From positions 1 to 64,000 of the IMG/VR virus record IMGVR_UViG_3300019458_000021: DNA of 64,000 bases; one strand, given 5' to 3'. The notes under the pieces were generated by a model. That model searched no databases. It was given only the letters and a program-made list of their open reading frames with translations, and was not told where the DNA came from. Numbering within the stretch: position 1 is the stretch's first letter; every line of letters begins with the position of its first letter. Below are positions 2,311-53,400 of the stretch, piece after piece. Both the position numbers and the translations under genes were made by a program.

Positions 2311-3186
2311 TTACTTTAGCCGCTTTGCTAACTCATCTAGTTTTTTACCTAAGTAACTGAATGCTGTATCAGCAACATACCAACCCTCTCCCACCATGTT
2401 CGGCATTTGCATGTACGATGCATACTTGTTGCTATTTCTTCGATACCAAACAATGTTCCCGCGCTTTGTTGGTGCCACTGCTATAAAATTTGGACGCTTT
2501 GTTAGATTTGGATTTGAAGCATAAACAACATCAAACTTCAACCCATGCTTTGCAAGCATGGATTTGAAACGATTATAGTACACAGCATCTTTTTCCCACC
2601 ACGGATACGACTCTGGATCACCAGCGTACCGTCCCTCCGTATTTTCGAAGTACGGATTAACAAATGTACCTTGCCGAGCTGTGTATCTAACTTTAGGGCC
2701 TCGAACATCTTTAACGATATAGTCAAACTGAATTCGTGTCGGAACTTGTTCCGGCGCAATTTGTGAAGCAGTTATTGGTTTCCCACGCACCTGGGCCTTT
2801 GCTTCTCGAGTCTGCTGCGAATTGAGGTTCACCTTGGCATCAATGTACGCTGCTTTTACAGCCTTCAAACGGTTTGCAATCGTCTTATACTCGGTTGTTA
2901 ATTTTTCGAGACGAGCTGCAAGATCTGGATGCGTCCGTTTATTGATGATGATCACACCATGCCTGCCTCCAAAAACCAAATCATCTGGCGTGGAGAGCGA
3001 CGTCGAGATCCAGGGGCTGATGGCCAGTCCCGGTGCCACGGTGTGCTGCGGCCCACCGACCTGGTCGCCCGCCGCGGCGAGGAAGATATCATCGATTTGA
3101 CCCTCAATGTGCTTCTTTCGATGTTCAATCACACGTTGCTGCCGTTCAATCGCCTCAAGCGATTCACGGACATGTATTAACTTCAT
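2311..3186 (-). CDS. Hypothetical protein, paralog of 5672..6400
   Basis: Shared motifs NPY.E....RYAG.PE.Y.W and G.IVWYRR. Confidence 0.85.
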   Translation of the reverse strand: MKLIHVRESLEAIERQQRVIEHRKKHIEGQIDDIFLAAAGDQVGGPQHTVAPGLAISPWISTSLSTPDDLVFGGRHGVIIINKRTHPDLAARLEKLTTEYKTIANRLKAVKAAYIDAKVNLNSQQTREAKAQVRGKPITASQIAPEQVPTRIQFDYIVKDVRGPKVRYTARQGTFVNPYFENTEGRYAGDPESYPWWEKDAVYYNRFKSMLAKHGLKFDVVYASNPNLTKRPNFIAVAPTKRGNIVWYRRNSNKYASYMQMPNMVGEGWYVADTAFSYLGKKLDELAKRLK

Positions 3187-3219
3187 GGGGTATATTTCCT
3201 TGGCTTATTTTTAGTCCTT

Positions 3220-3294
3220 TGGAGCGGGTAGAGGGATTCGAACCCTCCTCCTCTGATTGGAAGTCAGAGATAATAGCCACTATACGACACCCGC
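3220..3294 (-). tRNA. tRNA-Gly(TCC)
   Basis: GCGGGTG/TACCCGC-T-CCA, loop CT-TCC-AA. Confidence 0.95.
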
Positions 3295-5674: not shown

Positions 5675-6400
5675 GAAAACGGTCCTGAACAGCAGCTTAA
5701 GCGTCTCGCCCATGCACATAAAGCATTGGTTCATCGAGAGCGTCATTACCGCAACGAGTTGCAGGATCTTAACTCGAAGCTGGTTGGAACTCGGCAAAAA
5801 ACCGCTGGATACTTAGAGGTTGTTGACGCAACAGGAAAACCAGTATTTTGGATCGAAAACATTCCGCAAAACATCGAATTTCGTCGATTGTACCAGATTG
5901 CAATACTTGGTCTTAGTCGGGTAGAGCGGGAAATCAAGAAGAACGAGACAGCACAACGCAACGTAAAGAGAGAAGACGTCAAACCAGTAACAACACCAGT
6001 ATCACAGATTCCTCAAAATCGAATTCCTGCAAAGATCTCATTGTCTATGTTTAATTCAATTGACAATCCATACTACGAATTCACCTCTGATCGCTATGCT
6101 GGTCCTCCTGAAGGTTATCAGTGGGATGCATCAGCTGGACTCGAATACTTCGAACTGAAGAGATTACTTGCTCGCTACAACATGAAAATCGACACTGTTT
6201 ACGCCAGCTCAGATAGTGTGACAAGACGATTTGCTGCTGTTGGCGAACGTGGTTCAATCGTGTGGTATCGTCGGCCTGGTAAGGAACGAAGCACACGACT
6301 TTCGATTCTTGGTATGGTGTTCAAGGGCGATCACCTGATAACCCGCAAAACAGCAGGAATGCGAAACGCACTCAAGACGTTGAAAGATAGGGCTAAATGA
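5672..6400 (+). CDS. Hypothetical protein, paralog of 2311..3186
   Basis: Shared C-terminal domain; isolated plus-strand gene in a minus-strand cluster. Confidence 0.8.
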   Translation: MENGPEQQLKRLAHAHKALVHRERHYRNELQDLNSKLVGTRQKTAGYLEVVDATGKPVFWIENIPQNIEFRRLYQIAILGLSRVEREIKKNETAQRNVKREDVKPVTTPVSQIPQNRIPAKISLSMFNSIDNPYYEFTSDRYAGPPEGYQWDASAGLEYFELKRLLARYNMKIDTVYASSDSVTRRFAAVGERGSIVWYRRPGKERSTRLSILGMVFKGDHLITRKTAGMRNALKTLKDRAK

Positions 6401-6503
6401 TAGGGCTAAATGAAAATTGCCGACTTAAAACGGGTAATTTTTGTAGTCATAAACACCTGTTACGGTATTTATGTCTTTAAAACGAAACGAGACCTTCAAA
6501 GAT

Positions 6504-6575
6504 TGGCAAGGGCGTAGGGAATCGAACCCTATCCTATTTGCTTCAAAGGCAAAAGTAGCTCCAAGCCTCGCCCCA
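6504..6575 (-). tRNA. tRNA-Gln(TTG) with shortened D arm
   Basis: TTTGC-CTTTGAA-GCAAA, T arm, CCA; D arm GCT-TGG-AGC. Confidence 0.8.
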
Positions 6576-6586
6576 ATTACAACAGA

Positions 6587-6705
6587 GTTGATTGTCGGAA
6601 TAACTGTCTTACGACCGTTGTGTCTACCATTCCACCATAGAACTTACGTGCTAGAAGGACTCGAACCTTCACGTCTTTAGACGAAGTATGTCATTCCTAC
6701 GCAAC
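6587..6705 (-). ncRNA. Structured RNA motif copy A enclosing a permuted tRNA-Leu-like module
   Basis: GTTG-CGTA-GGAATGAC-ATACTTC ... GTTATTCC-GACAAT-CAAC; encloses variable arm, T arm, acceptor, then Leu-type D arm. Confidence 0.7.
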
Positions 6706-6708
6706 TGT

Positions 6709-6777
6709 TGGTCTCCCTACCAAGACTCGAACTTGGTCCGCAACGTCCCGAACGTTGTACGCTCACGCTCTAGGGAG
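6709..6777 (-). tRNA. tRNA-Pro(CGG) with truncated D loop
   Basis: CAACG-TTCGGGA-CGTTG; C1-G72, A73; close relative of Pro(TGG) at 12772. Confidence 0.8.
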
Positions 6778-6782
6778 ATTTA

Positions 6783-7019
6783 CTACTGATGCATTTGTTG
6801 CTGTTCCTGCCGAGCCTTTTCGATTGACTCGAGATGCTTGCGGATATATCGCATGAATAGCAGTGCTTTGTCCTCCGCAAGGAAGATAGCATTGCCGATA
6901 TCGTCAATAGGCACAGGAAACTGAAATCCAGTCTCCGTCTCGTACCACAATTCTCTTTCACGATAAAAAATGAACTTAACCTTTTTGTTGTCAACAACCA
7001 TTTCTTTCAATGTACTCAT
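6783..7019 (-). CDS. Hypothetical phage protein
   Basis: ORF track; RBS GGAG. Confidence 0.75.
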   Translation of the reverse strand: MSTLKEMVVDNKKVKFIFYRERELWYETETGFQFPVPIDDIGNAIFLAEDKALLFMRYIRKHLESIEKARQEQQQMHQ

Positions 7020-7033
7020 GTGCTTCTCCTTAG

Positions 7034-7131
7034 AGCGGACCGGGGAATTGAACCTAGCACTATAGATCTAGAATTTAAGTGCCCCATCTCCCGATTCACT
7101 GTCGGGCGTACTAACGTTGTACGAGGACCGC
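7034..7131 (-). tRNA. Atypical tRNA: Gly-like body, GTG anticodon, hairpin inserted in the T stem
   Basis: GCGGTCC/GGTCCGC-T; CCCGA-CAGTGAA-TCGGG; GCACT...AGTGC insert before GGTTCAATTCC. Confidence 0.6.
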
Positions 7132-7137
7132 ATTGTT

Positions 7138-7221
7138 TGGTTGCGGAGGTCAGGAGTCGAACCTGCTATCAGGTGGTTATGAGCCACCTATGGTCAATGA
7201 TATCCGTTCCACTTCTCCGCC
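7138..7221 (-). tRNA. tRNA-Met(CAT), initiator-like, enlarged D loop
   Basis: GGTGG-CTCATAA-CCACC; 1:72 mismatch; about 15-nt D loop. Confidence 0.8.
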
Positions 7222-7226
7222 ATTGA

Positions 7227-8510
7227 TTACTTGTGAAATTGCTCTTCTTCTGTTGAACCTTTCAAAGCCGTTGTCGAAGATTTACCTGATTGAATTACTT
7301 GAGTAACTTCATCGAAGTAACTTGTACCAACTTCACGTTGGTGTTTCACCGCCGTAAATCCTTTCTCAGCTGCTGCAAACTCCTTCTGTTGAAGTTCAAC
7401 AAAAGCAGTCATGTGATTCCTTGCATATCCATACGCTAGTTCAAACATCGAATAGTTCAGCGAATGAAAGCCAGCAAGAGTGATAAACTGAAACTTGTAT
7501 CCCATTGCGCCAAGCTCTCGTTGGAACATCGCGATTGTAGCATCGTCGAGATTTTTCTTCCAGTTGAACGATGGTGAACAGTTGTACGCTAATATCTTAT
7601 CGGGATATTTGCTATGAATCGCTTCCGCAAATCGTTTTGCAAACGTCAAATCTGGTTTGCCTGTTTCACACCAGATCAAGTCTGCATACGGTGCATATGC
7701 AAGCCCACGCGAAATAGCCTGATCGAGACCGTTGCGAACACAAAAAAATCCCTCTGAAGTTCTCTCGCCAGTCAAGAACGGTTTATCGTTTTCATCAATG
7801 TCACTGGTCAGTAAGTTTGCTGCTTCGGCGTCCGTTCGTGCAAATAGCACTGTTGGCACACCCATAATGTCAGCTGCTAATCTCGCAGCGACTAATTTCT
7901 CTACTGCTTCTTTTGTCGAGACAAGAACTTTACCACCCATGTGGCCACATTTTTTCACTGATGCGAGCTGATCTTCAAAATGAACACCAGCCGCACCTGC
8001 TTTAATCATTGCTTTCATTAGCTCATGTGCATTTAGCACACCACCAAATCCTGCTTCTGCATCTGCAACAATTGGAGCAAAATAATCGACTATGCGACAT
8101 CGGGGATCACCGTTGCTTTCCATGTGTTGGATTTGGTCTGCTCGTTGCAACGCATTGTTGATCCGTGTAACAACGGTTGGAACACTTGTGGCAGCATACA
8201 ACGATTGATCCGGATACATACTCAAACTGTCATTCGCATCAGCCGCAACCTGCCAACCCGACAGGTAAATCGCAGGCACGCCTGCTTTAACTTGCTGAAC
8301 TGCTTGATTGCCTGTTAGTGCACCAAGAGCATTGACGAATGGCCGCGTATGGAGAAGGCTCCACAACTTGTTTGCGCCTTGTCGCGCAAGAGTATGTTCA
8401 ACTTGGATAGACCCACTTAAACGATTAACGTCTTCAGCAGTATATGGTCGCGTTATCCCTTTCCATCTTGCATCTGTTTCCCACTCACGGTGCAATCGGT
8501 TGTCCATCAT
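7227..8510 (-). CDS. aceA: Isocitrate lyase
   Basis: Catalytic KKCGH motif, [18 protein letters not shown]-terminal GSTEEEQF; full length 427 aa. Confidence 0.98.
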
Positions 8511-8573
8511 TGTTCCCTATTGTGAAATGCAGGAGACATTATACACTGAAACTAGTCAATGTTAACACAAACT

Positions 8574-8647
8574 TGGAGCAGCTAGTGAGATTCGAACTCA
8601 CGCCCTAACGCTGGCAACGTCAGATACTACCGTTATACTATAGCTGC
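8574..8647 (-). tRNA. tRNA-Gly(GCC)
   Basis: GCAGCTA/TAGCTGC-T-CCA, loop TT-GCC-AG. Confidence 0.93.
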
Positions 8648-8837
8648 AATTGGATAATTCCTGCATGCACTTTTCGATGACAATTGCTGCACAAGCACAC
8701 GCATTTTTCAACTCTGTTTGATAAATGCCCAGTTGCTTGTTTAGGAAGCGAAACTCGGACGTGGGTTTATTGTCGAGGCAGTTCGAACATTGTTTCATGT
8801 TCATATTTATGTTTCGAAAAACAACCTATTTTCGAAT

Positions 8838-8912
8838 TGGCGCCCTGTATCCGAATCGGACGGCTCTTCAACGTTCGAAGCGTTGCGTGCATTCCATTAC
8901 ACCTTACAGGGC
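8838..8912 (-). tRNA. tRNA-Arg(TCG)
   Basis: CAACG-CTTCGAA-CGTTG; T loop TCCGATT; CCA. Confidence 0.85.
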
Positions 8913-8959
8913 AGTGTACTATCTTTATATCTTCGTTCCACCTTAGGGAACTACCTTTG

Positions 8960-9043
8960 TGGGCAAGGTGGGACTCGAACCCACACGATCACAGATCACA
9001 AGATTCTGAATCTTGCACGGCTACCAAATTACGTCACAAGCCC
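8960..9043 (-). tRNA. tRNA-Leu(CAG)
   Basis: Long variable arm, CAAGA-TTCAGAA-TCTTG, A73. Confidence 0.92.
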
Positions 9044-9092
9044 GTTTCGTTTCTTTATGAGCGTGTATACCGATTCCACCACAAGGCCAAAG

Positions 9093-9389
9093 TTAGTTAA
9101 TGCTGAGTAGTTGTTTTAGTCGATTTTCGTTAAACCCGTACACAATAGTGTTTCCAACAACAATCAGTGGAACACCATGCCCACCCAGTCGTTTGAATCT
9201 AGCTGCTGCATCGAAATCTTTTTCGATATCGTAGTCAAAGTAAACTATGTTATTTCGTCCGAAGAACACTCGCGCTTGACGGCAATACGGACACCGCGAT
9301 GTACCATACATCGTCACAGTTGGTTGACTGGATCCAATGCTAGGTACAATCAACGCCAACAATAATCCAAGAACGTCTCTTCGTTTCAT
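9093..9389 (-). CDS. Glutaredoxin-like protein with N-terminal signal-like segment
   Basis: CPYC motif, GVPLIVVG; RBS plus start duplicated (18-nt tandem repeat). Confidence 0.85.
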   Translation of the reverse strand: MKRRDVLGLLLALIVPSIGSSQPTVTMYGTSRCPYCRQARVFFGRNNIVYFDYDIEKDFDAAARFKRLGGHGVPLIVVGNTIVYGFNENRLKQLLSIN

Positions 9390-9416
9390 ACAGTCTCCTC
9401 GTTTCATACAGTCTCC

Positions 9417-9508
9417 TGGCGGAAGACCGAGCACTCGAAGCCCAAACCGCTCTCACGGTTCAATCTGATTTCGAATCAGCTCTGGCGCGCCTGTCCAGTT
9501 GATCTTCC
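9417..9508 (-). tRNA. tRNA-Ser(CGA)
   Basis: GGAAGAT/GTCTTCC-G-CCA, loop TT-CGA-AA, long variable arm. Confidence 0.9.
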
Positions 9509-9531
9509 CAGTGTATCTTTGCGTGACCAAT

Positions 9532-10080
9532 TTAGTCCCACAATGCTCGTAAGTATTTACCAAACAATTTCATTCCGTTGTCGATGCGTTGTTCTCGTTG
9601 TTCTCGTTTGTACTCATCTCGCTCATTGTACTCATCTCGCTCATTGCTAGGATGGATTTGTTCAAAAGCCCAAATCATCTCACTAAGAATGTAATCCCAT
9701 CGTTGGTGAAACAATTCGTCCGTGTCCCATGCATGTTCCACAGGAGGAGCCGCAGTCGACCGAAGATGTTCTGGTACATCCGCGTCATCCGTGAATGGTG
9801 ATCCATGTTTCACTTCTTGAAGCTTCTTCAACATTGGAAGAACAATATACGCCAATGTTGAATCCATTGACCACACGTCGTAGTTGTCAATGCGAACTTT
9901 GATGGTTCGTTTCTTTTTGCTCTCCAACCAGTCACACAAAGAACGGACCCAAGTGTTAGTGTTAGCCAACCAGTCACCAAGTTGATGACAACGATCTTCT
10001 GAAACGCCAACGTGTTGCAACAGATGTGCGAGCTGGTAAGGACCAACCCAACTACGATATTTCCCGATGTACACTTTCAC
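9532..10080 (-). CDS. Hypothetical phage protein
   Basis: GTG start after GGAGAAATAGAC; longer ORF call begins inside tRNA-Leu. Confidence 0.75.
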   Translation of the reverse strand: MKVYIGKYRSWVGPYQLAHLLQHVGVSEDRCHQLGDWLANTNTWVRSLCDWLESKKKRTIKVRIDNYDVWSMDSTLAYIVLPMLKKLQEVKHGSPFTDDADVPEHLRSTAAPPVEHAWDTDELFHQRWDYILSEMIWAFEQIHPSNERDEYNERDEYKREQREQRIDNGMKLFGKYLRALWD

Positions 10081-10098
10081 GTCTATTTCTCCTATGTT

Positions 10099-10184
10099 TG
10101 GTGGTCTCGGAGAGACTCGAACTCTCACACCTATCGGCACCACCCCCTCAAGATGGCGTGTCTACCAAATTTCACCACGAGACC
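10099..10184 (-). tRNA. tRNA-Leu(GAG)
   Basis: CCATC-TTGAGGG-GGTGG, long variable arm, CCA. Confidence 0.93.
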
Positions 10185-10386
10185 ATTCAATTCATTCCGA
10201 TCGTTCATGAACAACATACGCAATGCCCGACTCGACATATCCAGCCGGTTCATTTGTGTAATGTTAAATCATGTATTAACAATGTACTTGTAATCCATCT
10301 CGCTTTGAAGCATTCTTTCGTACAAAACGAGGCCCACCCCGTTCCGGCCGGTGTGAATCTCCAGGAAAGAGATTCGAGTACTGGCT

Positions 10387-10653
10387 CTATCTTCGAACAT
10401 TTGTCTCGGTGTCCAGCCAACCAACTGCCGTGGGCCCTACTTTCACGTATTGGGGTACTAAGTGTTGTTTCAGGTCTTCGTACAGGGTGAAAGCTCCCGC
10501 TGATGAAGTGTACAGCTTCTCCCAACCGTCTTCTCCGTAGACCCAAAGGTCGGCCCCACCGTAATAGCTCGTGATGAGCGCGGGCATCCCTTTGTAGGTC
10601 CCACACCAACCAGTGGTGCCGAACATCTTCACTTCTTTAGCCTCTGCCAGCAT
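10387..10653 (-). CDS. Hypothetical protein
   Basis: ORF track only. Confidence 0.5.
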   Translation of the reverse strand: MLAEAKEVKMFGTTGWCGTYKGMPALITSYYGGADLWVYGEDGWEKLYTSSAGAFTLYEDLKQHLVPQYVKVGPTAVGWLDTETNVRR

Positions 10654-10735
10654 CTTTAACCCGATGTTCTGCTTCGCCTAGTTTAGTTTTCATGAACTAT
10701 TTAGTAGTCTGAAAACTATGAACACCATTCGATAC

Positions 10736-10810
10736 TGGTGCCGGCTGTTGGTATCGAGCCAACCCCTCCACGTCTTCAGCGTGGCGCTAATCCATCTCAG
10801 CTAAACCGGC
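10736..10810 (-). tRNA. tRNA-Phe(GAA)
   Basis: CCACG-CTGAAGA-CGTGG, CCA. Confidence 0.92.
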
Positions 10811-10941
10811 TTTAATCAACGCTAATAGTTCCTTAGAACTTACCACAACCATTTTCCACTCACTCTTCAGCTATTCTCTTCTTGGGAATGTCATAATGAG
10901 CGAATCGACTTCTGTGAAACCAACAACGTTTAATGCCAAGA

Positions 10942-11112
10942 TTAGTCTGCTTGTTCACACTTCAATGTTGCGTTAGGATCATCTTCAAGAAGATCCTTAT
11001 GCTGCGCAATCGCAAGTGTGCATTCCTGTTGCGTTTCAAAGCGTAGTTGTGACGGTATTTCAATCGGACCACTGCATCCGTGAAACGTCATAATAACGAT
11101 TATCCAATACAT
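10942..11112 (-). CDS. Small hypothetical secreted or membrane protein (56 aa)
   Basis: Manual translation MYWIIVIMTFHGCSGP...; RBS GGAGG. Confidence 0.55.
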   Translation of the reverse strand: MYWIIVIMTFHGCSGPIEIPSQLRFETQQECTLAIAQHKDLLEDDPNATLKCEQAD

Positions 11113-11146
11113 TGTATTCCTCCTGTTGGATAACCCTATTTATTTC

Positions 11147-11617
11147 TCATCTCAGTACCATCAATACATAATCATAAGGATTGTGTCCTTGATAATCAAG
11201 TGCCTTGTGATGGTAGTCTAAAACGTCGAGCATTTCGGGTGTTATTTCATCAAGCGGAATTTCCTGAAAACCAACACTTCGATAGATCGATTCATGACCG
11301 GGCCGAGCATTAACATATACAGGCCGTTCCTTGTAACCATCAAACACGTGGTCCATTAACGTTTTTATATATCCTTGACCTTGATATCGAGGCCACGTAC
11401 GAACGTTGTCCATAAACACATATCCTCTTCCTCGCCCACGAAGTTTGAACAAACTTATTCGCGACACAATTGAATTGCCGTTGTACAAGTAGTATGTGTC
11501 CTGATCTTTCGTGATGCGAAACGAACCAGGCAACTTACGAAGCACTTGTTTGCCAGGCCGATTGCTGTGAAACATTCGGGCTGTGCCAGGCGTCCATGAG
11601 ATTTCGTTGAGTTTCAT
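11147..11617 (-). CDS. GNAT family acetyltransferase
   Basis: VRTWPRYQGQGY acetyl-CoA motif and YRSVGF; start moved to MKLNEI. Confidence 0.8.
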   Translation of the reverse strand: MKLNEISWTPGTARMFHSNRPGKQVLRKLPGSFRITKDQDTYYLYNGNSIVSRISLFKLRGRGRGYVFMDNVRTWPRYQGQGYIKTLMDHVFDGYKERPVYVNARPGHESIYRSVGFQEIPLDEITPEMLDVLDYHHKALDYQGHNPYDYVLMVLR

Positions 11618-11641
11618 AGTTAAGTATTTACGTGGTTTGTG

Positions 11642-11703
11642 TGTACAGGGGTGGAATTGAACCACCGACACGCACGCTGCTCTACCAACTGAGCTACCTG
11701 TAC
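11642..11703 (-). ncRNA. tRNA-like RNA lacking the anticodon arm
   Basis: GTACAGG/CCTGTAC acceptor, canonical D and T arms, only 12 nt between them. Confidence 0.75.
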
Positions 11704-11714
11704 AAAGAGCTTGA

Positions 11715-11809
11715 GTTATTGTGTACACGGAAGACGCTGGATTTGAACCAGCTATGTCTGATTTGTAGTCAGATTTTCAACCAATGAAGTAACCGTTGTA
11801 CTACGCAAC
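11715..11809 (-). ncRNA. Structured RNA motif copy B enclosing anticodon arm (ACA) and T arm
   Basis: GTTG-CGTA-GTACAACGG-TTACTTC ... CCGTGTAC-ACAA-TAAC. Confidence 0.7.
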
Positions 11810-11818
11810 AAGCTTCAG

Positions 11819-11907
11819 CGGAAGGTAGAGGTGTCGATCCCCCAGCAGTTCTTCACCGCTGTTCACTTGTTTTCAAGGCAAGCCTGTTCGCCGGAACAAT
11901 ACCTTCC
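11819..11907 (-). tRNA. tRNA-Ser(TGA)
   Basis: GGAAGGT/ACCTTCC-G, loop CT-TGA-AA, long variable arm. Confidence 0.88.
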
Positions 11908-11981
11908 GTGGCGTTCCCAACCGGATTCGAATCCGGTGTTTCAACCTTCCGTAATGGCGAGCTATTTCACCAAAACAGCTG

Positions 11982-12053
11982 TGAACGGTACGGGAATCGA
12001 ACCCGTCTCTTCGGCTTGAAGGGCCGAGGATCTCTCCAGAAATCCAACCGTTC
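11982..12053 (-). tRNA. tRNA-Glu(TTC)
   Basis: TCGGC-CCTTCAA-GCCGA; GAACGGT/ACCGTTC. Confidence 0.88.
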
Positions 12054-12639
12054 AATGTTTTTTGCTGTTTCGTCCAGCATATGTTGCTGTCTGTGAATGA
12101 CAGTTTGGACAAAGAAATTCCAAATTTTGCAGACGATTGTCATTATTCACACCATTTTTGTGTTCAAGCTGCAAAGTTAACGTTTCTCCCTGCCATATAC
12201 CACCATTTTCGCACTTTGCACACTTATAATCAAGTCTACATTCTTCAACGAGACGCTTTTTCAGATCTTTTCGATCATACGTTGAGTTTTTGGTAAGAAT
12301 ATCCTTCAACGCTATTTTTCGCAAGCGTTTGCTCAATCGTTTCCTTTCATAACCAGCACTGTACGGATCAAAATGATCAGTCGAAATGTTATGTTTAAAT
12401 AATCGTGCTTGAAGAATTTTGTATGATGCTCCTGAAACGCTCATACCCATTCGCCGAACAACTTCTGCGCGCGACTTTGATCGTTGAACAGCTTGTTTCA
12501 ACAACTCGGTGTTATCAAACACGCTTGTCTGTTGTCGCTTATGTGGTGCAAAGTGTTCGGTTGAAATTTTGTGTTGTTTGATTGCAGTTAACAATCTTTC
12601 CCGCGTCATTCCACCATTTTTATAGCCAAGATTTGCCAA
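12052..12639 (-). CDS. HNH endonuclease
   Basis: YKCAKC...LQLEHKNGVNNDNRLQNLEFLCPNCHSQT; start uncertain. Confidence 0.9.
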   Translation of the reverse strand: MANLGYKNGGMTRERLLTAIKQHKISTEHFAPHKRQQTSVFDNTELLKQAVQRSKSRAEVVRRMGMSVSGASYKILQARLFKHNISTDHFDPYSAGYERKRLSKRLRKIALKDILTKNSTYDRKDLKKRLVEECRLDYKCAKCENGGIWQGETLTLQLEHKNGVNNDNRLQNLEFLCPNCHSQTATYAGRNSKKH

Positions 12640-12771
12640 CGCCTGTTTTAGATTTGTTGCTGTAGATATCGCTCGTTCTAATATTTCTTTCAGGAGGACT
12701 TATATGGATTGGGACAATATAGTATTTATAGGACACCATCAGGGGCATACCAATAGACGAACACTACATAA

Positions 12772-12846
12772 TGGTCTCCGTACAAGAACTTGAATCTTGT
12801 CCACAACGCCCCAAACGTTGTACGCTAACCCTCACGCTCTACGGAG
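12772..12846 (-). tRNA. tRNA-Pro(TGG)
   Basis: CAACG-TTTGGGG-CGTTG, C1-G72, CCA. Confidence 0.88.
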
Positions 12847-12946
12847 AAATTTGTAGCACGACAAAACCACCTCTGTGTGCGTGGCTGTGGGACGCTACTT
12901 TGTCTTATAAACGCTTGGCGGATGACTGTTAGGAACATCAATCGAG

Positions 12947-13092
12947 ATTAAACGTGCAGAGAACATGCGGTTTCCCGCTCGGGTTATGAGCCCGCTTGGC
13001 CCCACGGCCGATTCGCCACAAAAAACACCTCGATGCTCTTTGTGGCGAATTTTAGAGTCGAACTAAATGAAGTAACTCTACTACTGCGCAAC
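12947..13092 (-). ncRNA. Structured RNA motif copy C enclosing a circularly permuted tRNA-Met(CAT)
   Basis: T arm plus ATTCGCC precedes GGCGAAT plus D arm plus CGGG-CTCATAA-CCCG; closed by GTAGTAGAG/TTCTCTGC. Confidence 0.75.
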
Positions 13093-13095
13093 GAT

Positions 13096-13172
13096 TGGTC
13101 TTGGTGACAGGAGTCGAACCTGCGTGGTCTCCGCCCCAAACGGAGTGACTAACCAGACTAGCCTACACCAAG
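13096..13172 (-). tRNA. tRNA-Pro(TGG), second copy
   Basis: CTCCG...loop TT-TGG-GG; CTTGGTG/CACCAAG-A-CCA. Confidence 0.9.
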
Positions 13173-13934
13173 AATGTCTTTTGCATAGCCTACACGACGC
13201 AATTGCGTGAGGTCAGCTTGTGTATATGTTTGGTATTTTCCTTTGATGTGTTCTGGCATCGGAAAATACTCAATTGCATTGCTCGAATCTTGCGTGATGA
13301 TTCGCGCTAATTCGTTAAATGATATTGCCACACCTGTTCCAACATCGTAGATTCCGCCAATAGGATTGGCGAGAAAGGACATGATAACATTCACGACATC
13401 TTCGACATGAATGAAATCTCGTTGTTGTTCACCGCTCTCAAACAGTCTGACTTTACCAGTTGTTTTGTATTGCTCACACAGTTGATGTATCATCGACGCC
13501 ATACGTCCTTTGCAATGCTCACCAGGACCGTACACGTTGAAATATCGTAGTCCAACGACGTGTGGCAGTTTAGTCGCTCGAACAAGGTCGTCGAACATCA
13601 GCTTTGACCATCCGTAAAGATTCAACGGATGTTCCTGTCCTGGTGTGTTACCGTACACAGCGGCCGACGATGCATAGATCAAAGGAATGTTCTGACAGTA
13701 CTCTAACACACGCTTAGAGTAGTCATAGTTTAACTCCATCATGCGCGATACGTCTGTTTCGGTTGTGTCTGCACACGCGCCTTGATGAATGACAGCCTCA
13801 ACATCAGTAAGTTCAAACAACGTGTTTCGGTTGTCGATATCGATCGATACTACTTGACGTCCTCGCGTCTGCAGTGTTTTTACAACATGACTTCCAATAA
13901 AACCATGAGCACCTGTCACAACAATCATTTCCAT
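13158..13934 (-). CDS. hldD: ADP-L-glycero-D-manno-heptose 6-epimerase-like NAD-dependent epimerase (C-terminally shortened)
   Basis: GAHGFIG, HQGACADTTE, YASSAAVYG, PLNLYGWSK, GLRYFNVYGP, YTQADL. Confidence 0.85.
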   Translation of the reverse strand: MEMIVVTGAHGFIGSHVVKTLQTRGRQVVSIDIDNRNTLFELTDVEAVIHQGACADTTETDVSRMMELNYDYSKRVLEYCQNIPLIYASSAAVYGNTPGQEHPLNLYGWSKLMFDDLVRATKLPHVVGLRYFNVYGPGEHCKGRMASMIHQLCEQYKTTGKVRLFESGEQQRDFIHVEDVVNVIMSFLANPIGGIYDVGTGVAISFNELARIITQDSSNAIEYFPMPEHIKGKYQTYTQADLTQLRRVGYAKDILGVG

Positions 13935-13973
13935 CTCTTATAAGTGATACATTACTTATAAGATGAAACAGGG

Positions 13974-14137
13974 TGCGGATGAACAGGATTTGAACCTGCA
14001 TAAGATATACAGACACCTTTCTTTCGGAACTCTTGTCGAAGGGCCTCTCGAGCGGTTATCCCTCAACTCACCGACTTAGTCGCATATCCACCTCTCTCCC
14101 GCTAGTGGGAAGCCGTCTTCATTTGCGCCACATCCGA
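13974..14137 (-). ncRNA. tRNA-like RNA with about 115-nt structured domain replacing the anticodon arm
   Basis: TCGGATG/CATCCGC acceptor, GCAGG-TTCAAAT-CCTGT T arm, internal GATATGC/GTATATC helix. Confidence 0.65.
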
Positions 14138-14142
14138 TAATA

Positions 14143-14219
14143 TGGTCAGGGTGAGAAGACTCGAACTTCCAACCTCCTGTCTCCAAAACAGGCCGTCTAC
14201 CAATTGACATTACACCCTG
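14143..14219 (-). tRNA. tRNA-Pro(TGG), third copy
   Basis: CCTGT-TTTGGAG-ACAGG; CAGGGTG/CACCCTG-A-CCA. Confidence 0.93.
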
Positions 14220-14226
14220 ATATTAG

Positions 14227-14291
14227 CGGCGAAGGAGGGATTCCAACCCCCGTTAGCCCCGCGGGGCTGTTCTCCATTAAACTACCTCGCC
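14227..14291 (-). ncRNA. tRNA-like RNA with anticodon loop collapsed to a tetraloop
   Basis: GGCGAGG/CTTCGCC; AGCCC-CGCG-GGGCT; T loop TTGGAAT. Confidence 0.7.
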
Positions 14292-14302
14292 AATCAAGCT
14301 GA

Positions 14303-14377
14303 GTTAAGATCGCAGACAGCAACAAAGTTCCACCAGGATTCTAGGGCGAAAGTGAAGTAACTGTCTTACTGCGCAAC
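14303..14377 (-). ncRNA. Structured RNA motif copy D
   Basis: GTTG-CGCA-GTAAGACAG-TTACTTC ... CTGTCTGC-GATCT-TAAC. Confidence 0.7.
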
Positions 14378-14381
14378 AACT

Positions 14382-14468
14382 TGGTGCCCTTGACAGGAGT
14401 CGAACCTGCACCCACTTATGTGGCCGATGCTCTCAACGTCGTGCGTTTACCAATTACACCACAAGGGC
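14382..14468 (-). tRNA. tRNA-Leu(GAG), second copy
   Basis: Loop TT-GAG-AG, long variable arm, CCA. Confidence 0.88.
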
Positions 14469-14492
14469 ATTATTTCTGTTTGATCATAGCGA

Positions 14493-14708
14493 TCAATTCA
14501 ATTCACCATTTACGGTATTGGATTCGCTCATTCTGTACAAGATGTTCACAGCTTCATGAAGTCCGTCCACAAAAGCGATTTGTTCTCCGATTAAACGAAT
14601 CTTTTCTTCTGGAGAAGAGTCTTCATTAAAGATTCGTTCGTCACGACGATTGTTAAAATAACACTTCTCCCTTGCATTCCCATCTGCTTGTTCGTCCCAC
14701 TTATTCAT
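14493..14708 (-). CDS. Hypothetical protein
   Basis: ORF track; RBS GGAG. Confidence 0.6.
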   Translation of the reverse strand: MNKWDEQADGNAREKCYFNNRRDERIFNEDSSPEEKIRLIGEQIAFVDGLHEAVNILYRMSESNTVNGELN

Positions 14709-19461: not shown

Positions 19462-19541
19462 TGGTGCTCGAGGGGGGATTCGAACCCCCGACCGATTCGG
19501 TTTTAGAGACCGCCGCTCTGAAACCACTGAGCTACTCGAGC
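19462..19541 (-). tRNA. Amber suppressor tRNA (anticodon CTA)
   Basis: GCTCGAG/CTCGAGC-A-CCA; GCGGT-CT-CTA-AA-ACCGA; perfect T arm. Confidence 0.88.
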
Positions 19542-34965: not shown

Positions 34966-36725
34966 CACACGACGAACAATACATTGCGTGCGTTAAGCAC
35001 ATTCTCGAGCACGGCGTTCAAAAACCAAACCGCACAGGGATCGACACGATCGGTGTGTTCGGCTATCAAATGCGTTTCGATCTGCGCGACTATTCGATTC
35101 CATTACTGACGACCAAGAAGGTGCACACAAAGTCGATAATTCATGAACTATTGTGGATGATGTCAGGTCGCGAAGATGTGAAATATCTTGAACAACACCA
35201 AATCACGATATGGGATGAATGGAAGAATAACAAAAGTCAACTAGGTCCAGTTTACGGCGCCATGTGGAGAGCTTATCCGCCCCCTCCAACGTTTTCACCA
35301 ACGCCCATTCGAAACGTTATAGACAATACGAAGATGCGCTCTTGGCAAGATGTTGTACCAACAATGATCTTATCGGAAGGAAAATATTCAAACAAACGAT
35401 TTACAAACATACAGGGAAGGTGCTATGTTGTTCTTGGTGTAGATGGTTTTCAAAATAATGGGGCTAAAGGACGAACGACAACTTATGCTGTTCGGTTTGA
35501 ACAAAGTGGCTGGATAAAACATGGTGTTAGCACAAGATTGGTTCGTTCAGGTCGATTTGTGGATCAGTCGGTGCCGTCTATCTATGGGATTGGAGCACTT
35601 GGTAACTATCGAAACAAAAAAGAAACGGAACAAAACAAACACTTACGACGAACGTGGGAACTGATGCTGTCTCGATGTTATAATCCTAATGATATAGCTT
35701 TTGAAACACACGGCAAGCAAGGCGTAAAAGTGTGCGAACGCTGGAAAGTTTTGAGCGATTTTCTTGAAGACGTCAAACTGCTGCCCAACTGGTTTGTCAA
35801 GCAACAAAAACAGAACTATGTCCTTGACAAAGACTATTACGGTTCTTCAAAACTTTACCATCCTGAAACGTGTGTGTGGCTTCCAAGATCACACAACAAT
35901 CTTTACCGCAAGGATGCTGTGCCTATTGTTTTATCTTCACCATCTAGCACACTGTTCTTTCCATGTGAAAACACCGCGGCAAAGTTTGTGGGGACAACAG
36001 CAGTAGTAATCAAAGCGAGACGTCTTGGAAAAGTAAAAACACTTATAAACGGTTTTGAGGTTGAACCATTTGTCAATAAAAACTTCGTTGTTCGATATCC
36101 AAACACGATTGATCAAGTCGCTACTATCGTTTGGAAACTGAAGAACACACCAAACGACCGCCGTCTCATTGTGTCGGGTTGGCATCCAGGGCTCTTGCCC
36201 TTCGATGGCATTTCTCCTTCTGAAAACGCTTCTCTTGGTCGTCAAGCATTGCCTCCATGTCACTATACGTTTCAACTATATGCAAAACCACTAACTGTTC
36301 AAGAGAGGTTGTATTCAATGACACGTCTTTATCACATTCCGGATGATGGATCAATGGATAACATAGAACAAATCCTCGATGAAAACAAAGTCCCAAAATA
36401 CGAATTGTCGCTGTTACTGAATCAACGGTCATGTGATGTTGGACTTGGTGTTCCATTTAATATCGTTCAATACAGTCTAATGCTTCGAATGTTTTGCGAG
36501 GTTGCAAATATGTCACCAGGCGATTTCATTTGGAGTGGTGCTGATGTACACATCTATGTTAACCACGTTGAATCTTTGCAAGAACAGATCACAAGAGAAC
36601 CGTATCAGTCGCCAAAATTTCGATTCAACAAAAGGGTTGACTCAATTGATTGTTTCAAGTACGATGACTTCGTTGTTGAAGGGTACATATCTCATCCACC
36701 GGTCAAAATGGACGTAGCTGTATGA
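34959..36725 (+). CDS. thyA: Thymidylate synthase with in-frame insertion of about 275 aa
   Basis: RTGIDT, ELLWMMSG, GPVYG, IDQV, ALPPCH, QRSCDVGLGVPFN. Confidence 0.95.
   Translation: MVTHDEQYIACVKHILEHGVQKPNRTGIDTIGVFGYQMRFDLRDYSIPLLTTKKVHTKSIIHELLWMMSGREDVKYLEQHQITIWDEWKNNKSQLGPVYGAMWRAYPPPPTFSPTPIRNVIDNTKMRSWQDVVPTMILSEGKYSNKRFTNIQGRCYVVLGVDGFQNNGAKGRTTTYAVRFEQSGWIKHGVSTRLVRSGRFVDQSVPSIYGIGALGNYRNKKETEQNKHLRRTWELMLSRCYNPNDIAFETHGKQGVKVCERWKVLSDFLEDVKLLPNWFVKQQKQNYVLDKDYYGSSKLYHPETCVWLPRSHNNLYRKDAVPIVLSSPSSTLFFPCENTAAKFVGTTAVVIKARRLGKVKTLINGFEVEPFVNKNFVVRYPNTIDQVATIVWKLKNTPNDRRLIVSGWHPGLLPFDGISPSENASLGRQALPPCHYTFQLYAKPLTVQERLYSMTRLYHIPDDGSMDNIEQILDENKVPKYELSLLLNQRSCDVGLGVPFNIVQYSLMLRMFCEVANMSPGDFIWSGADVHIYVNHVESLQEQITREPYQSPKFRFNKRVDSIDCFKYDDFVVEGYISHPPVKMDVAV
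35280..36104 (+). mobile_element. Homing-endonuclease-like (HNH-type) domain inserted in frame in thyA
   Basis: TWELMLSRCYNP...GVKVCERW...LDKD...YHPETCVW; no intein or intron motifs recognised. Confidence 0.7.
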
Positions 36726-40539: not shown

Positions 40540-40890
40540 AACACTGTGTGAAGCAGCTGCAAGGCGGACAAGACCCGAGTTCGAATCTCGGCATCTCCAC
40601 CAACACGGTTCGAATGATAAGTTGAGTCTAGGGCAGAGGTACAACAGTTGTGAGACACTGCCATTGTGAGAAATGCTAGCAAAGCTCACACACGAACCAC
40701 CTATGGGGGTGAATGGAATTGATTGACGTGCGAGTGGCCAGTGGACAGTGCGAGAGACGACTGACGTAATCAGCGTAAAACGTTAAACGCAAACGACTCT
40801 GCGTACAATGTTGAGGAACTCTACGGAGTAGCTGCTTAACAGCAGCCTTGCCTCGACCGAGCGTGACTGCTTGGGAACAGGAAACGTCAG
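40540..40890 (+). ncRNA. ssrA: Circularly permuted (two-piece) tmRNA
   Basis: Acceptor piece ending CCGAG-TTCGAAT-CTCGG-CATCTCC-ACCA (40602) precedes GGGGGTG (40705) with G3:U70; tag ANDSAYNVEELYGVAA* at 40789-40839. Confidence 0.92.
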
Positions 40891-50457: not shown

Positions 50458-53400
50458 TCAACCGCACTTGCTCGATCCACAGTTTGTGCACTTGTGGCAC
50501 CCTTCGCTGTAGACAACCAACGTCGATCCACAATCACCACACGTTACACCTTCCGCAGCTTCGCCGTCCTTGATGAACGATGACAGGTACTTCTTGATCT
50601 GGAACAAGAACGTTCCTACAAATACATCTTGGACTCGGTCGAGGGCAGCAACAATGTTTTTGATCAACACTCCATGACGAAGATTCAGACTGATCATACG
50701 AGCAACCTTTGTTGTGTTGTTGTCGACCGCAATCTTCTCGAGCGTCTCGTCGATGTGCTTCTTAGGAATCCCCTTGCTGCAGGCGAGCGCTGTCAGCACT
50801 TCAACAGCATCGTTTGACGTTACGGTTTTCTCATAGCTGTTCGTATGCACGAAGAATCCAAACGGTCGCAGCTTCTGATCATCCCACCAAAGAACGGTCA
50901 GGTACCACTTACGTCCTTCAGCCTTCAACGTCTTCATTGTCGCCGGAGCTGAATCAGGAAGCTTAACGTCTTCAAGGATGATCTCTTCATCGGCATCGGT
51001 TGCTGTTTTCTCGTCTTTGGCGCCAAGAACCGTCGTCATCGTACCGGCGCGATAGGTTGTAACACCTTTAACATATCCTGATGCAAACGCATCTGTGTAA
51101 ATCGACTTGAATTGCTCGAACGGATATTCGTTTGGAACATTGACCGTGTTATGGGAAACAATACCGTTGATGAGATAGCTATGTGTATCTTCCACTTCAA
51201 TATCGTACACATTTTTCAAACCTGCGCTCCGGATATCCGTAACCACAACGCTCGTGAGATGTCGATCAAATTTGAGGCCTGTTTTTTCTATAAACGACAT
51301 TCTAACAAAATTGCCTCTTTGTTGACACTTTCGCAATCTCGCTCTAACCATGCTGCCATATGTATTGCTTGGTTGTTGGGCAATCAATTGTTCAAACACA
51401 TCGTTTGAAATATAAGTTTGTTTCTGTGTTTTGCCCTGCACTGTATATATCATCTTGTGGTCTTCAATAGGTACAATCGTATCCATGTCTTCTAACCAAG
51501 CCGTAACACCATATGTTGTTTTTCCTTCTCCAACATTTCTTGTACAGAGGGAATACTGAACACCCATTGAAGATAACATGTGTGTCACTTTTTCTGCAAC
51601 ATCTTTGGCATACCCATCAAACACAACCAACGAGGCACCATACTCGTTTGTTTTCAAATAGCCATCAAGAGTTAGCCCTTCAATGAAAGCCTTCCAGATT
51701 GAAACCGGGGAATCCAACAGCCATTGAGGGAGATGTTTATTGGCAGCACCGTGTCCAAACTCTTGCTTAAACCAGCGAGCAATCGAATTCGAATGCACAT
51801 AGTGCGTATTGACGCCCCACCTGTCGTCAGTCTGAACATGATGGGTATTAAACAATTGCAGCATCAAACGTTCGCACAGAGCGGATACTTTTTCATTCTT
51901 TTCACAAATTGCAATAGAATGATCGGTCAAGCTTCCATCCGCCACCCACATTCCAAGTAGTAAAGCAAAATCTTCATCGACAACTTGCGGGAACTTCCTA
52001 TGCTTTGCGTTGGCTGCAAATGTTGGTTGAGGAGGGGATACGTAACCTCTCTCGACGACAAATGCGTTTGTGCGATAAAACACCTTGTCTCCAACTTCAA
52101 TATCGTCGAGTGATTTCCATCCCGTAGCACATTTTAGCTTATGGGTATAAGCGGCGGTTATCTCAAATCCGTTGTCAAAACGGACAGTAGCGCAAGGTTT
52201 GACGCCGCCAAAATAATGACGTGTTATTGCCTTTTCCTGACCATTTTCATCAAGAACAGTGAAAGAATCACACGGCACAACAAATCCTTCTTGCGATGGG
52301 TTGTGAATACCCAATGCTTCAACAGGTTTTAATCCCTTGTTTGTCGAAATTAGTGTACCCTCTGCCACACATTTCGACATTGCACTGTCAACCCACCTGG
52401 CGAATCCCTTTAGATCGTTCACATGATCTTTCACATTCAAACTTAGTGCTGTGGCGGCCCAGGAAGCGTTCGAATTCCACTGCTTCTTGCGTTTCATAAC
52501 ACGAACACCGTAATCTTCGCACAAAACTTCCTTTGTTAAACCACGATTCTTATCTATCTTGTAAACGAGTCCATCAGGAGCAACACCACGAAGAATCTCT
52601 TCATCGCCTTCTTTAGTGAACTTAAACATCGACGTTTCGTGCCACGCTCCTTCAAACCATTTAGGTGTGACATCCGCAATGTATTCGGGCATTGTACCAA
52701 CAATCACCGTACGAACGTACTCGTGCAAGAACACCGGTTCAAGTCCACCCGAAACAACATTGGCAAAGATCGACGTGTTACCTGTTGGTTGAATTGAGAG
52801 AAGAGAACTGTTCCGAATACCGTAATTGTTAAGTTTCTCCCAGTATTCCTGTGGAAGATCGAGACTACGAATAAACACGCCTTGCATGTGCTTGTCTGGA
52901 TCACACAAAGAGAACATTCCTTTCTCTTGTGCAAGATCAATTGAAGCCATGTATGCTGACTGTGCAACCGTCCTCATGACTTCATCGCGATACCGATCGG
53001 CGTTCTTGCTTGCGAATTTTGTTTTCAGCATGTAAAGGGCTGATCCCCAGCCAAGAATACCAACACCGATCCGACGTTTGTTCTGAATACTCCACTCATA
53101 TTCTGAAAGAGGAGCCTTCGTGAGATCGTTGATGTTATCGAGGAATCGAACCATGTAGCCTGTGTACTGCGCAATTTTTGCAAGATCAAACCCATCCTCG
53201 ATCACGAACTGTGTAAGGTTAAGCGATCCAAGATTACACACACCGCCAGGAGCAAGTGTTTGTTCACCACATTGTAAATTGTTGATATATGTCCATTTTT
53301 TCTTTCCATTTCTTGTTTGAGTCTCTTGAATACAAACAAAGAAGTTATGGAAGTTATCTACAGTTCCGTTATAAACATTCTGTTTCCCAACATACCTGAC

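Follow-up and report, generated by a model that had tools for sequence, protein, structure and literature searches.

Ro60 (Rsr/TROVE) is a ring-shaped protein, and the paired ends of Y RNAs form its docking site. Metazoan Y RNAs are encoded by Pol III genes and have no tRNA-like domain, and Yrn1 of Deinococcus radiodurans forms the RYPER complex together with Rsr and PNPase. Y RNAs dock on Ro60 by their closing stem and tether or gate the protein, and Ro60-Y RNA-PNPase complexes are formed (PMC4201824, PMC12135203). For several Y RNAs, it has been demonstrated that they physically bind Ro60 and depend on it to be stable (PMC4201824, PMC12135203). In YrlA of bacteria and phages, the motif GNCGAAN0-1G near the 5' end is similar to GGUCCGA, which Xenopus Ro60 contacts; a conserved YUAY opens the variable loop; and the head has the order T-arm, acceptor-like stem-loop, and D-arm (Chen et al. 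2014, PMC4201824). At least two Y RNAs occur per species, a tRNA mimic and a plain hairpin among them, and RNase P cuts YrlA of Mycobacterium smegmatis (PMC4201824). Thermus phage phiLo has two Y-like RNAs with a CGAA loop upstream of its Ro60 gene, and its Ro60 binds both of them and also host PNPase (PMC12135203). Here, we analyzed the first 64,000 nucleotides of the virus record IMGVR_UViG_3300019458_000021 (hereafter the window), in which four copies (c1 to c4) of an RNA scaffold with variable inserts (heads) lie in an array of tRNA genes.

We assign a probability of about 0.85 to the reading that c1 to c4, together with two copies next to the Ro60 gene of the same phage, are six paralogous Ro60-binding Y RNAs whose heads are tRNA mimics or plain hairpins. 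The assignment is based on the excess of the scaffold motif, recovery of the copies by a covariance model, covariation of the helices, linkage of the scaffold to Ro60 genes, matches to YrlA, and the presence of Ro60 in the same genome. A sequence-only reading of the window had not recognized the scaffold as a known family and had suggested a small ribozyme, a processing or ligation signal, or a protein-binding clamp. Because the scaffold is tightly linked to Ro60 genes and two copies lie upstream of the Ro60 gene of this phage, we regard it as a known RNA class rather than a new ribozyme, namely the Ro60-binding stem of bacterial and phage Y RNAs of the YrlA/YrlB type. Among the earlier suggestions, the clamp is supported, whereas nothing was found for a ribozyme or ligation (no Rfam ribozyme match). 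The family is known, but its members described here are new and are not annotated by current models.

An exact search for the pattern GTTGCGYA-N8-10-TACTTC returned four matches in the window, all on the minus strand with 5' ends at 6705, 11809, 13092, and 14377, and none in 100 dinucleotide-preserving shuffles (expected number, 0). A pairing script placed the scaffolds at 6587-6705, 11715-11809, 12947-13092, and 14303-14377, reproducing the four minus-strand copies of the sequence-only reading. The same reading had described unpaired CGYA and TACTTC as invariant and P2 as an 8-bp helix of variable sequence, and both descriptions hold. In a MAFFT alignment, GTTGCG-A-G and TACTTC are invariant, and P2 has 8 bp in every copy despite its differing sequences, with c2, c3, and c4 needing one bulged base by hand reading. 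The bulge-related column (A20) is A in all eight seed copies of the covariance model described below, and the block (U/A)UAC-UUC, located directly after P2, is invariant in these eight and in the four window copies. The ends of the scaffold had been placed at the GUUG/YAAY pairing (P1). This motif is present, but the helix continues beyond a conserved UC bulge, since 4-6 nt located 5' of GUUG pair with the sequence after the bulge, 3' of YAAY, and form an additional outer helix of 5-6 bp. Furthermore, the 3' strand of P1 in c3 reads UAA(u)C, which fits better than TAAT. The closing stem is thus ~9-10 bp in total, broken by the UC bulge, and the approximate extents of the full elements, counting the outer helix, are listed in Table 1. 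In c1, c3, and c4, the outer stem shares nucleotides of its 5' strand with the CCA end of the tRNA upstream. Minimum free energy (MFE) folds of the copies yield the outer stem, P2, and the inserted hairpins. In c1, the scaffold reads as an extended closing stem, GUUG, a CGUA loop, the 8-bp P2, and AUACUUC. The internal-loop motif of the window copies is UGCGUAG or UGCGCAG; compared with the published GNCGAAN0-1G, one A is changed to Y and the first G to U. This motif and the (U/A)UAC-UUC block follow each other as the published YrlA signatures do.

The covariance model, designated R1, was built from c4 and seven copies from unrelated IMG/VR viral contigs. In the window, R1 found exactly the four copies (scores in Table 1) and nothing further at E <= 10. 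Among 41 model hits, 90.4% of the cells are paired, compared with 59% in shuffled alignments and 37-48% with slid partners, and double changes are found in 14 of 17 pairs. For the six paralogs of the phage, the corresponding values are 96%, 69%, and 29-42%, with double changes in 12 of 17 pairs. All four Watson-Crick pair types are represented at most positions of the outer stem and of P2. P1 is largely conserved in sequence, with an invariant G-C, and is not a covarying helix. The alignments were fitted to the model and are therefore biased towards the structure, but the slid and shuffled controls are still far below the observed values. The scaffold helices covary strongly and more than expected by chance. 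A covariance model and covariation among homologs were the checks proposed along with the sequence-only reading; the model recovered all four copies, the homologs covary, and the search of viral and metagenomic loci ties the scaffold to Ro60, as follows.

A scan of IMG/VR with the 5' motif, to which the invariant G had been added, gave 120 loci (loci and contigs are cited by L numbers). Most of these are chance matches within open reading frames (ORFs), and genuine loci were distinguished by tRNA adjacency, copy number, and the covariance model. A subset of the loci has multiple copies or a position in a tRNA array. In four of them (L084, L062, L106, and L028), Pfam identified the ORF directly downstream of the RNAs as a TROVE (Ro60) protein, and tblastn detected a TROVE gene in 11 of the 120, located directly downstream of the RNAs in the loci examined. 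The reciprocal test, in which 80 JGI metagenomic loci and 80 IMG/VR viral loci were picked by the TROVE protein alone and searched with R1 at a cut-off of E <= 0.01, is stronger evidence of linkage than the motif-selected loci. The metagenomic set contained 52 matches in 37 of 80 loci and the viral set 53 matches in 40 of 80 loci. All 105 matches are on the strand of the TROVE gene, and 77 of the 160 loci have at least one. In the viral set, nearly all matches lie upstream of the gene, within ~1,100 nt of it and mostly within ~500 nt. Rhizobium phage RHph_Y65 has four R1 matches between tRNA-Leu and the TROVE coding sequence (CDS), and Caulobacter phage CcrColossus has a match 41 nt upstream of the TROVE CDS, in both cases within an unannotated gap. 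The R1-positive scaffold relatives in RHph_Y65 read GUUGCGAA. Scaffold-bearing relatives align with Rfam YrlA (RF02553) over its full length at 34-48 bits (E ~1e-3 to 2e-8 depending on search size), which is below the threshold, and seven YrlA matches coincide with R1 matches (L046, L174, L183, L177, L172, and L122). From the window, c1 also gives a full-length alignment with YrlA, at 12 bits, and its T, acceptor-like, and D parts fall in the YrlA order.

Two observations on these loci are recorded separately. RHph_Y65 (MN988525.1, L122; 2714-3678) and CcrColossus (JX100810.1, L121; 2714-2802, 2965-3078, and 3784-3915) harbor unannotated Y RNA candidates between tRNA genes and the TROVE CDS, marked by R1 and sub-threshold YrlA matches. 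TROVE is matched in two separate pieces in L106 (1-2274, minus strand) and L040 (6137-8318, minus strand), and the intervening segment in L106 holds another ORF, which suggests an intron, intein, or inserted gene inside Ro60.

Within the window, no TROVE protein was detected by Pfam on 39 ORFs or by tblastn. An exact-protein look-up identified the window as positions 1-64000 of JGI 3300019458 contig Ga0187892_10000057 (237,379 bp). An ENA contig nearly identical to it (ERZ27251176 k141_439466) has a length of 351,809 bp, indicating that the source is a jumbo phage with a genome of ~352 kb. Walking leftward through overlapping contigs (>= 99.8% identity) led to a 577-aa protein with TROVE and vWA domains (L291:15832-17565; Pfam TROVE, E 3.8e-23), whose gene is ~31.8 kb left of window position 1 and on the same strand as c1 to c4. 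In the PDB, the protein best matches Thermus phage phiLo Ro60 (9KOP, E 2e-19) and next D. radiodurans Rsr. Directly upstream of the gene, at L291 15560-15740, are two further R1 matches (41.4 and 38.5 bits). Both start with GUUGCGUAG, carry UUACUUC, and have no tRNA-like head, and they are followed by a GC-rich terminator-like hairpin with a T run. Therefore, Y RNAs precede Ro60 in this phage in the canonical way, and four more copies lie far off in the tRNA array. The window and the walked loci amount to ~135 kb of the genome, so that six copies are a minimum and more may exist. Protein-pattern scans for Ro60 in JGI metagenomes and IMG/VR did not return the contig of this phage, and tblastx of the scanned TROVE loci against the phage showed no synteny.

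Table 1. Putative Y RNA copies and adjoining tRNA or tRNA-like genes in the window.
Feature	Position	Strand	Evidence and remarks
Putative Y RNA copy c1, YrlA type	6580-6710	-	Pattern match; R1 34.6 bits, E 1.2e-5 (c1 absent from seed); MFE fold shows stems and T-arm
Putative Y RNA copy c2	11708-11815	-	Pattern match; R1 45.8 bits, E 3.2e-8; partial Rfam tRNA match; fold
Putative Y RNA copy c3, YrlA type with long acceptor-like stem	12939-13097	-	Pattern match; R1 31.4 bits, E 6.8e-5; fold z = -5.05
Putative Y RNA copy c4, short, YrlB-like	14295-14383	-	Pattern match; R1 63.5 bits (c4 is a seed member); fold
tRNA-Gln(UUG), 4 nt downstream of c1 extended stem	6504-6575	-	ARAGORN; Rfam tRNA 32 bits
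tRNA-Pro(CGG)-like gene, reduced D-arm, CCA end	6709-6777	-	Fold shows acceptor and T-arm; paralog of tRNA-Pro 12772-12846 by sequence
tRNA-like gene without anticodon arm, 62 nt, 4 nt downstream of c2	11642-11703	-	Rfam tRNA 50.1 bits; fold
Class-II-like tRNA relative directly upstream of c2	11817-11909	-	Cloverleaf-like fold, long variable arm, z = -3.06
tRNA-Pro(UGG)	13096-13172	-	ARAGORN; Rfam tRNA 46 bits; c3 GUUG starts 3 nt past tRNA
tRNA-like gene with 3-nt 'anticodon' loop, 65 nt, 3 nt downstream of c4	14227-14291	-	Rfam tRNA 46.1 bits; fold
tRNA-Leu(GAG)	14382-14468	-	ARAGORN; Rfam tRNA 45.2 bits; c4 GUUG starts 4 nt past CCA

All four window copies adjoin tRNA or tRNA-like genes within 3-9 nt (Table 1). 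The sequence-only reading had placed each copy just after a tRNA; this is the case for c3 and c4, 3-4 nt past tRNAs called by ARAGORN, but the neighbors of c1 and c2 (6709-6777 and 11817-11909) were called neither by ARAGORN nor by Rfam, though their folds are cloverleaf-like. The 3' end of the gene at 6709-6777 overlaps the 5' strand of the extended stem of c1, and the extended stem of c4 overlaps the CCA of tRNA-Leu(GAG). On the other side, the tRNA-like gene at 11642-11703 probably sets the 3' end of c2 via RNase P cleavage. A promoter and terminator scan of the array gave counts at the background level, with no excess between the copies and the tRNAs. R1 elements also adjoin tRNA genes in unrelated Ro60 loci (L136, L149, L164, and L122). 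A related contig (L014/L065) is ~70-76% identical and syntenic to the window and retains orthologs of c1 and c4 (the latter at L014:7171-7294). In L014, c2 is absent from the orthologous site, where the flanking tRNAs are retained, and the ortholog of 11642-11703 is an intact tRNA-Phe(GAA), whose window counterpart has lost the anticodon arm. Gain and loss seem to affect Y RNA genes in the same way as the neighboring tRNA genes. A megablast search of GenBank phages with the array region found no relatives, the sole match being 33 nt of tRNA, and the nearest phages according to topoisomerase II show only ~34-35% identity.

The position of the copies invites the explanation that they are punctuation of a tRNA operon, that is, structured spacers that guide or time precursor cleavage by RNase E, III, P, or Z and have no Ro60 role, with the Ro60-proximal copies being a separate use of the fold. 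The spacing of 3-9 nt from tRNA or tRNA-like genes, the overlap of the outer stem with the upstream CCA end, and the lack of a promoter-like or terminator-like excess between copies and tRNAs are consistent with this explanation. However, many Ro60 loci have the scaffold beside the gene with no tRNA nearby (e.g., L062/L210 and L106), and every one of the 105 R1 matches is strand-locked to the Ro60 gene. In addition, published signatures of Ro60 recognition agree with the invariant unpaired nucleotides (PMC4201824, PMC12135203), and the contig without c2 has nevertheless kept the flanking tRNAs. Punctuation without Ro60 is improbable in our view, although it fares best among the alternatives considered here.

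The variable part, described earlier as cargo that ranges from a plain hairpin to tRNA arms, shows this range in folds and Rfam alignments, with the plain hairpin in c4 and the tRNA arms in c1, c2, and c3. The head of c1 consists, in order, of a small V hairpin (6673-6682), a T-arm (6654-6670), a 6-bp acceptor-like hairpin (6638-6653), and a D-arm (6620-6636). The head of c3 has a T-arm (13051-13067) and an 18-bp acceptor-like hairpin (13011-13050) followed by three small hairpins, one of which bears a 7-nt anticodon-like loop (CUCAUAA), and its D region is atypical. The order of T-arm, acceptor-like stem-loop, and D-arm is complete in c1, as aligned to the Rfam YrlA consensus, and is clear for the first two elements in c3. 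The head of c2 is a cloverleaf in the normal tRNA order, comprising a short D-like hairpin, a 5-bp stem closed by a 7-nt loop (CUACAAA), and a T-arm, and P2 stands where the acceptor stem of a tRNA would be. It partially matches Rfam tRNA (RF00005) at 11736-11791 (30.4 bits, model positions 8-63). The head of c4 is one imperfect hairpin and is not tRNA-like. No copy has a full tRNA cloverleaf with an acceptor stem and a CCA-ready 3' end; ARAGORN calls none of c1 to c4, and Rfam tRNA matches only c2, partially. A permuted or split tRNA gene was also considered and rejected, as c1 and c3 hold T, acceptor-like, and D parts and the conserved scaffold replaces the anticodon arm.

The tRNA-like heads might alternatively act as decoys independent of Ro60, titrating host tRNA-targeting nucleases or tRNA-modifying enzymes, with the scaffold serving as a clamp that replaces the acceptor or anticodon stem. 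The diversity of the heads, the heavy investment of the phage in tRNA biology (at least 27 tRNAs, a Thg1-like enzyme, and a transfer-messenger RNA (tmRNA)), and the degenerate tRNA-like genes without an anticodon arm next to c2 and c4 would suit such a function. Nevertheless, c4 and both Ro60-proximal copies keep the scaffold without a tRNA-like head, and it is the sequence of the scaffold, not only its shape, that is conserved across unrelated phages and tied to Ro60 genes. Decoy function is moreover compatible with Ro60 binding and is not a true alternative to it; as an explanation that dispenses with Ro60, it is even less probable than punctuation.

A small self-cleaving or self-ligating ribozyme that matures or circularizes tRNA-derived inserts is a highly improbable explanation. 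Invariant unpaired nucleotides between covarying helices are typical of small ribozymes, and the inserts of c1 and c3 resemble permuted tRNA halves. However, no ribozyme family in Rfam 15 was matched at either the gathering or the E-value threshold, and c1 and c3, whose heads have no anticodon arm, cannot give a decoding tRNA. In YrlA, the T-arm, acceptor-like stem-loop, and D-arm follow in precisely the order of these heads (PMC4201824), and the genomic linkage is to the gene of an RNA-binding protein, not to ligases. Finally, the scaffold could be a repeat that acts at the DNA level and not as RNA, for instance as a site of recombination or homing or as a miniature mobile element. This reading would suit the multiple copies, the richness of the region in homing endonucleases and inteins, and the presence or absence of c2 between relatives, but covariation already makes it very unlikely, because compensatory changes, G-U pairs among them, maintain base pairing only in the RNA of one strand, and furthermore all copies are oriented as the tRNA genes and the Ro60 gene and have no terminal inverted or direct repeats apart from the RNA stems, so that it is the least credible of the four.

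Several results weigh against the assignment of c1 to c4 as Y RNAs. They are ~38-46 kb from the phage Ro60 gene and lie in a tRNA array, unlike YrlA/YrlB and other described Y RNAs, for which ~2 kb is typical. None of them reaches the RF02553 threshold of 69 bits; the score of c1 is far below it, and c2 to c4 have no match at E <= 10. The cmscan alignment pairs the first stem of Rfam YrlA with P2, while the motif order (CGAA-type motif, 8-bp helix, and YUAY) suggests that this first stem corresponds to the outer stem. The block that contacts Ro60 may be either GUUG-CGYA or UACUUC, both of which are candidates. Unlike the GNCGAA(N)G of YrlA, the window motif is UGCGYAG, with CGYA instead of CGAA. 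Moreover, R1 did not detect the published upstream Yrl1 and Yrl2 of Thermus phage phiLo, indicating that the scaffold is not universal among phage Y RNAs.

At the Rfam gathering threshold, a scan of the window returned only tRNAs and a permuted tmRNA, and in an E-value scan of 6400-14600, no family other than tRNA matched the copies significantly. A Vault match over c2 (21.6 bits, E 0.5) and a YrlA match on a tRNA (19.4 bits) were judged to be chance. Likewise, none of 20 TROVE loci scanned reached the RF02553 gathering threshold. A separate observation concerns phiLo itself (MH673673.1, L294), in which weak R1-like elements are located downstream of the Ro60 CDS at 3015-3084 (19.5 bits) and 3206-3289 (8.6 bits). 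These elements have the outer stem, the 8-bp helix, and GUACUUC/GACUUU, with no CGAA, and overlap the small CDS phiLo_25. They may be additional, unrecognized Y-like RNAs.

We propose the following pathway for the window copies as Y RNAs. The conserved scaffold (5-6 bp outer stem, UC bulge, GUUG/YAAC, CG(Y/A)A internal loop, 8-bp helix, and YUAC-UUC) would be the Ro60-binding module, and the variable cargo would be the effector head. The four copies are presumably transcribed inside tRNA precursor transcripts, since no excess of promoters or terminators separates them from the tRNAs. They would then be released by tRNA-trimming enzymes, with RNase P acting at the 5' end of the downstream tRNA and 3'-end processing acting on the upstream tRNA; the R1 elements that adjoin tRNA genes in unrelated Ro60 loci are consistent with this route. 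The released copies would bind the phage Ro60 via the scaffold, and their different heads might tether or gate Ro60 towards different partners, for which host PNPase (as in RYPER) and tRNA-recognizing enzymes are candidates. The outcome would be a remodeling of structured-RNA decay or quality control during infection. Candidate roles in infection are structured-RNA decay, tRNA quality control, and counter-defense. A more elaborate version, which we regard as speculative and rather unlikely, is that one Ro60-docking chassis with swapped tRNA-mimic heads, synchronized with the phage tRNAs, forms a programmable set of RNA adaptors for counter-defense or selective tRNA/rRNA turnover. In that version, each adaptor would steer Ro60/PNPase to, or decoy, a different tRNA-recognizing host factor, such as the anticodon nucleases of anti-phage defense.

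The tRNA array and its surroundings have further features of their own. The genes at 6709-6777, 11817-11909, and 7040-7220, all on the minus strand, are non-canonical tRNA-like genes that were missed by or are sub-threshold in ARAGORN and Rfam; features of this group are a reduced D-arm, a 9-nt 'anticodon' loop, and long inserts. The gene content of the array exceeds the 27 called tRNAs. The genes at 11642-11703 and 14227-14291 have an acceptor, D-arm, and T-arm and no proper anticodon arm, and may be either tRNAs in decay or mimics that deliberately lack the anticodon. The array also contains an unannotated 195-aa ORF with a CxxC...CxxC pattern (12052-12639, minus strand). A tRNA with a CTA anticodon (19462-19541, minus strand; Rfam tRNA 64 bits), labeled 'Pyl' by ARAGORN, is an amber suppressor. 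A class-I release-factor gene with PCRF/RF-1 domains (L291:9068-10507), ~25 kb left of the window, is in three pieces around an ORF on the opposite strand. Together, the CTA tRNA and the fragmented release-factor gene hint at TAG recoding or an interrupted release-factor gene. A permuted tmRNA of the two-piece type (40542-40839, plus strand; RF04321, 97.2 bits) is located in a region of replication and nucleotide metabolism. Auxiliary genes at 7227-8510 (minus strand), 33529-34455 (plus strand), and 13158-13934 (minus strand) encode isocitrate lyase (Pfam E 1.7e-106) and a sugar epimerase, both set among tRNA genes, and a Thg1-like 3'-5' nucleotidyltransferase, which could repair tRNA 5' ends.

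This region of the phage also carries a heavy load of selfish elements. Ribonucleotide reductase (50458-56265, minus strand) has 1935 aa with intein and HNH domains, PhoH (31631-33487, plus strand) has a LAGLIDADG insert, and the domain of the 588-aa thymidylate synthase (34959-36725, plus strand) is in two separate stretches. A free-standing HNH gene is located at 28527-29123 on the plus strand.

With the Y RNA assignment, an apparently unknown 'ribozyme-like' repeat gains an annotated function, and an uncultivated phage of ~350 kb is predicted to encode at least six Y RNA genes together with its own Ro60. The Rfam YrlA model at its curated threshold misses a widespread scaffold, whereas a small covariance model finds candidates beside about half of 160 Ro60 genes. 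Y RNA genes can be located tens of kilobases from Ro60, within tRNA arrays, and searches limited to the neighborhood of Ro60 would therefore undercount them. With a constant Ro60-binding stem and a natural series of different heads, this genome will be convenient for asking what the tRNA-like module of a Y RNA recruits, a question that is open in the literature.

Compared with YrlA and YrlB from Salmonella Typhimurium and M. smegmatis (PMC4201824), the window elements share the paired ends and YUAY, and their CGYA near the 5' end resembles the CGAA motif. They also share the presence of several paralogs per genome, both tRNA mimics and plain hairpins, on the strand of Ro60, and the heads of c1 and c3 follow the YrlA order. 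YrlA and YrlB are processed from a common precursor, as we propose for the window copies. Unlike YrlA, the window scaffold has the extra outer stem and UC bulge beyond the Rfam model. By description, c2 is similar to D. radiodurans Yrn1, in which the tRNA-like arms have the orientation opposite to that in YrlA and a stem-loop occupies the anticodon position (PMC4201824), while Yrn1 adjoins rsr and the loop of c2 has the full 7 nt. Metazoan Y RNAs (RF00019), to which the copies have no match at E <= 10, have a comparable modular organization, in that the lower stem, bulged and conserved, serves Ro60 and the upper part varies and serves other partners. By our own comparison, the GGUCCGA contacted by Ro60 (PMC4201824) resembles GUUGCGY in the window.

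The closest phage system is phiRo60 with Yrl1 and Yrl2 of Thermus phage phiLo (NAR 2025, PMC12135203; PDB 9KOP and 9L5Y), and phiRo60 is the closest solved relative of the Ro60 of our phage. Both systems are phage-encoded with two RNAs directly upstream of Ro60, and Yrl1 and Yrl2 share the stem-bulge-stem organization with the window scaffold, whose CGYA loop resembles their CGAA loop. Binding to Ro60 and host PNPase was demonstrated experimentally for phiLo. Copies in a tRNA array and tRNA-like heads, as in the window, are not described in the phiLo paper (PMC12135203). Relative to these known systems, the locus is modestly new in having six paralogs in one phage, a tRNA-array location far from Ro60, the CGYA variant, and a range of heads on one scaffold.

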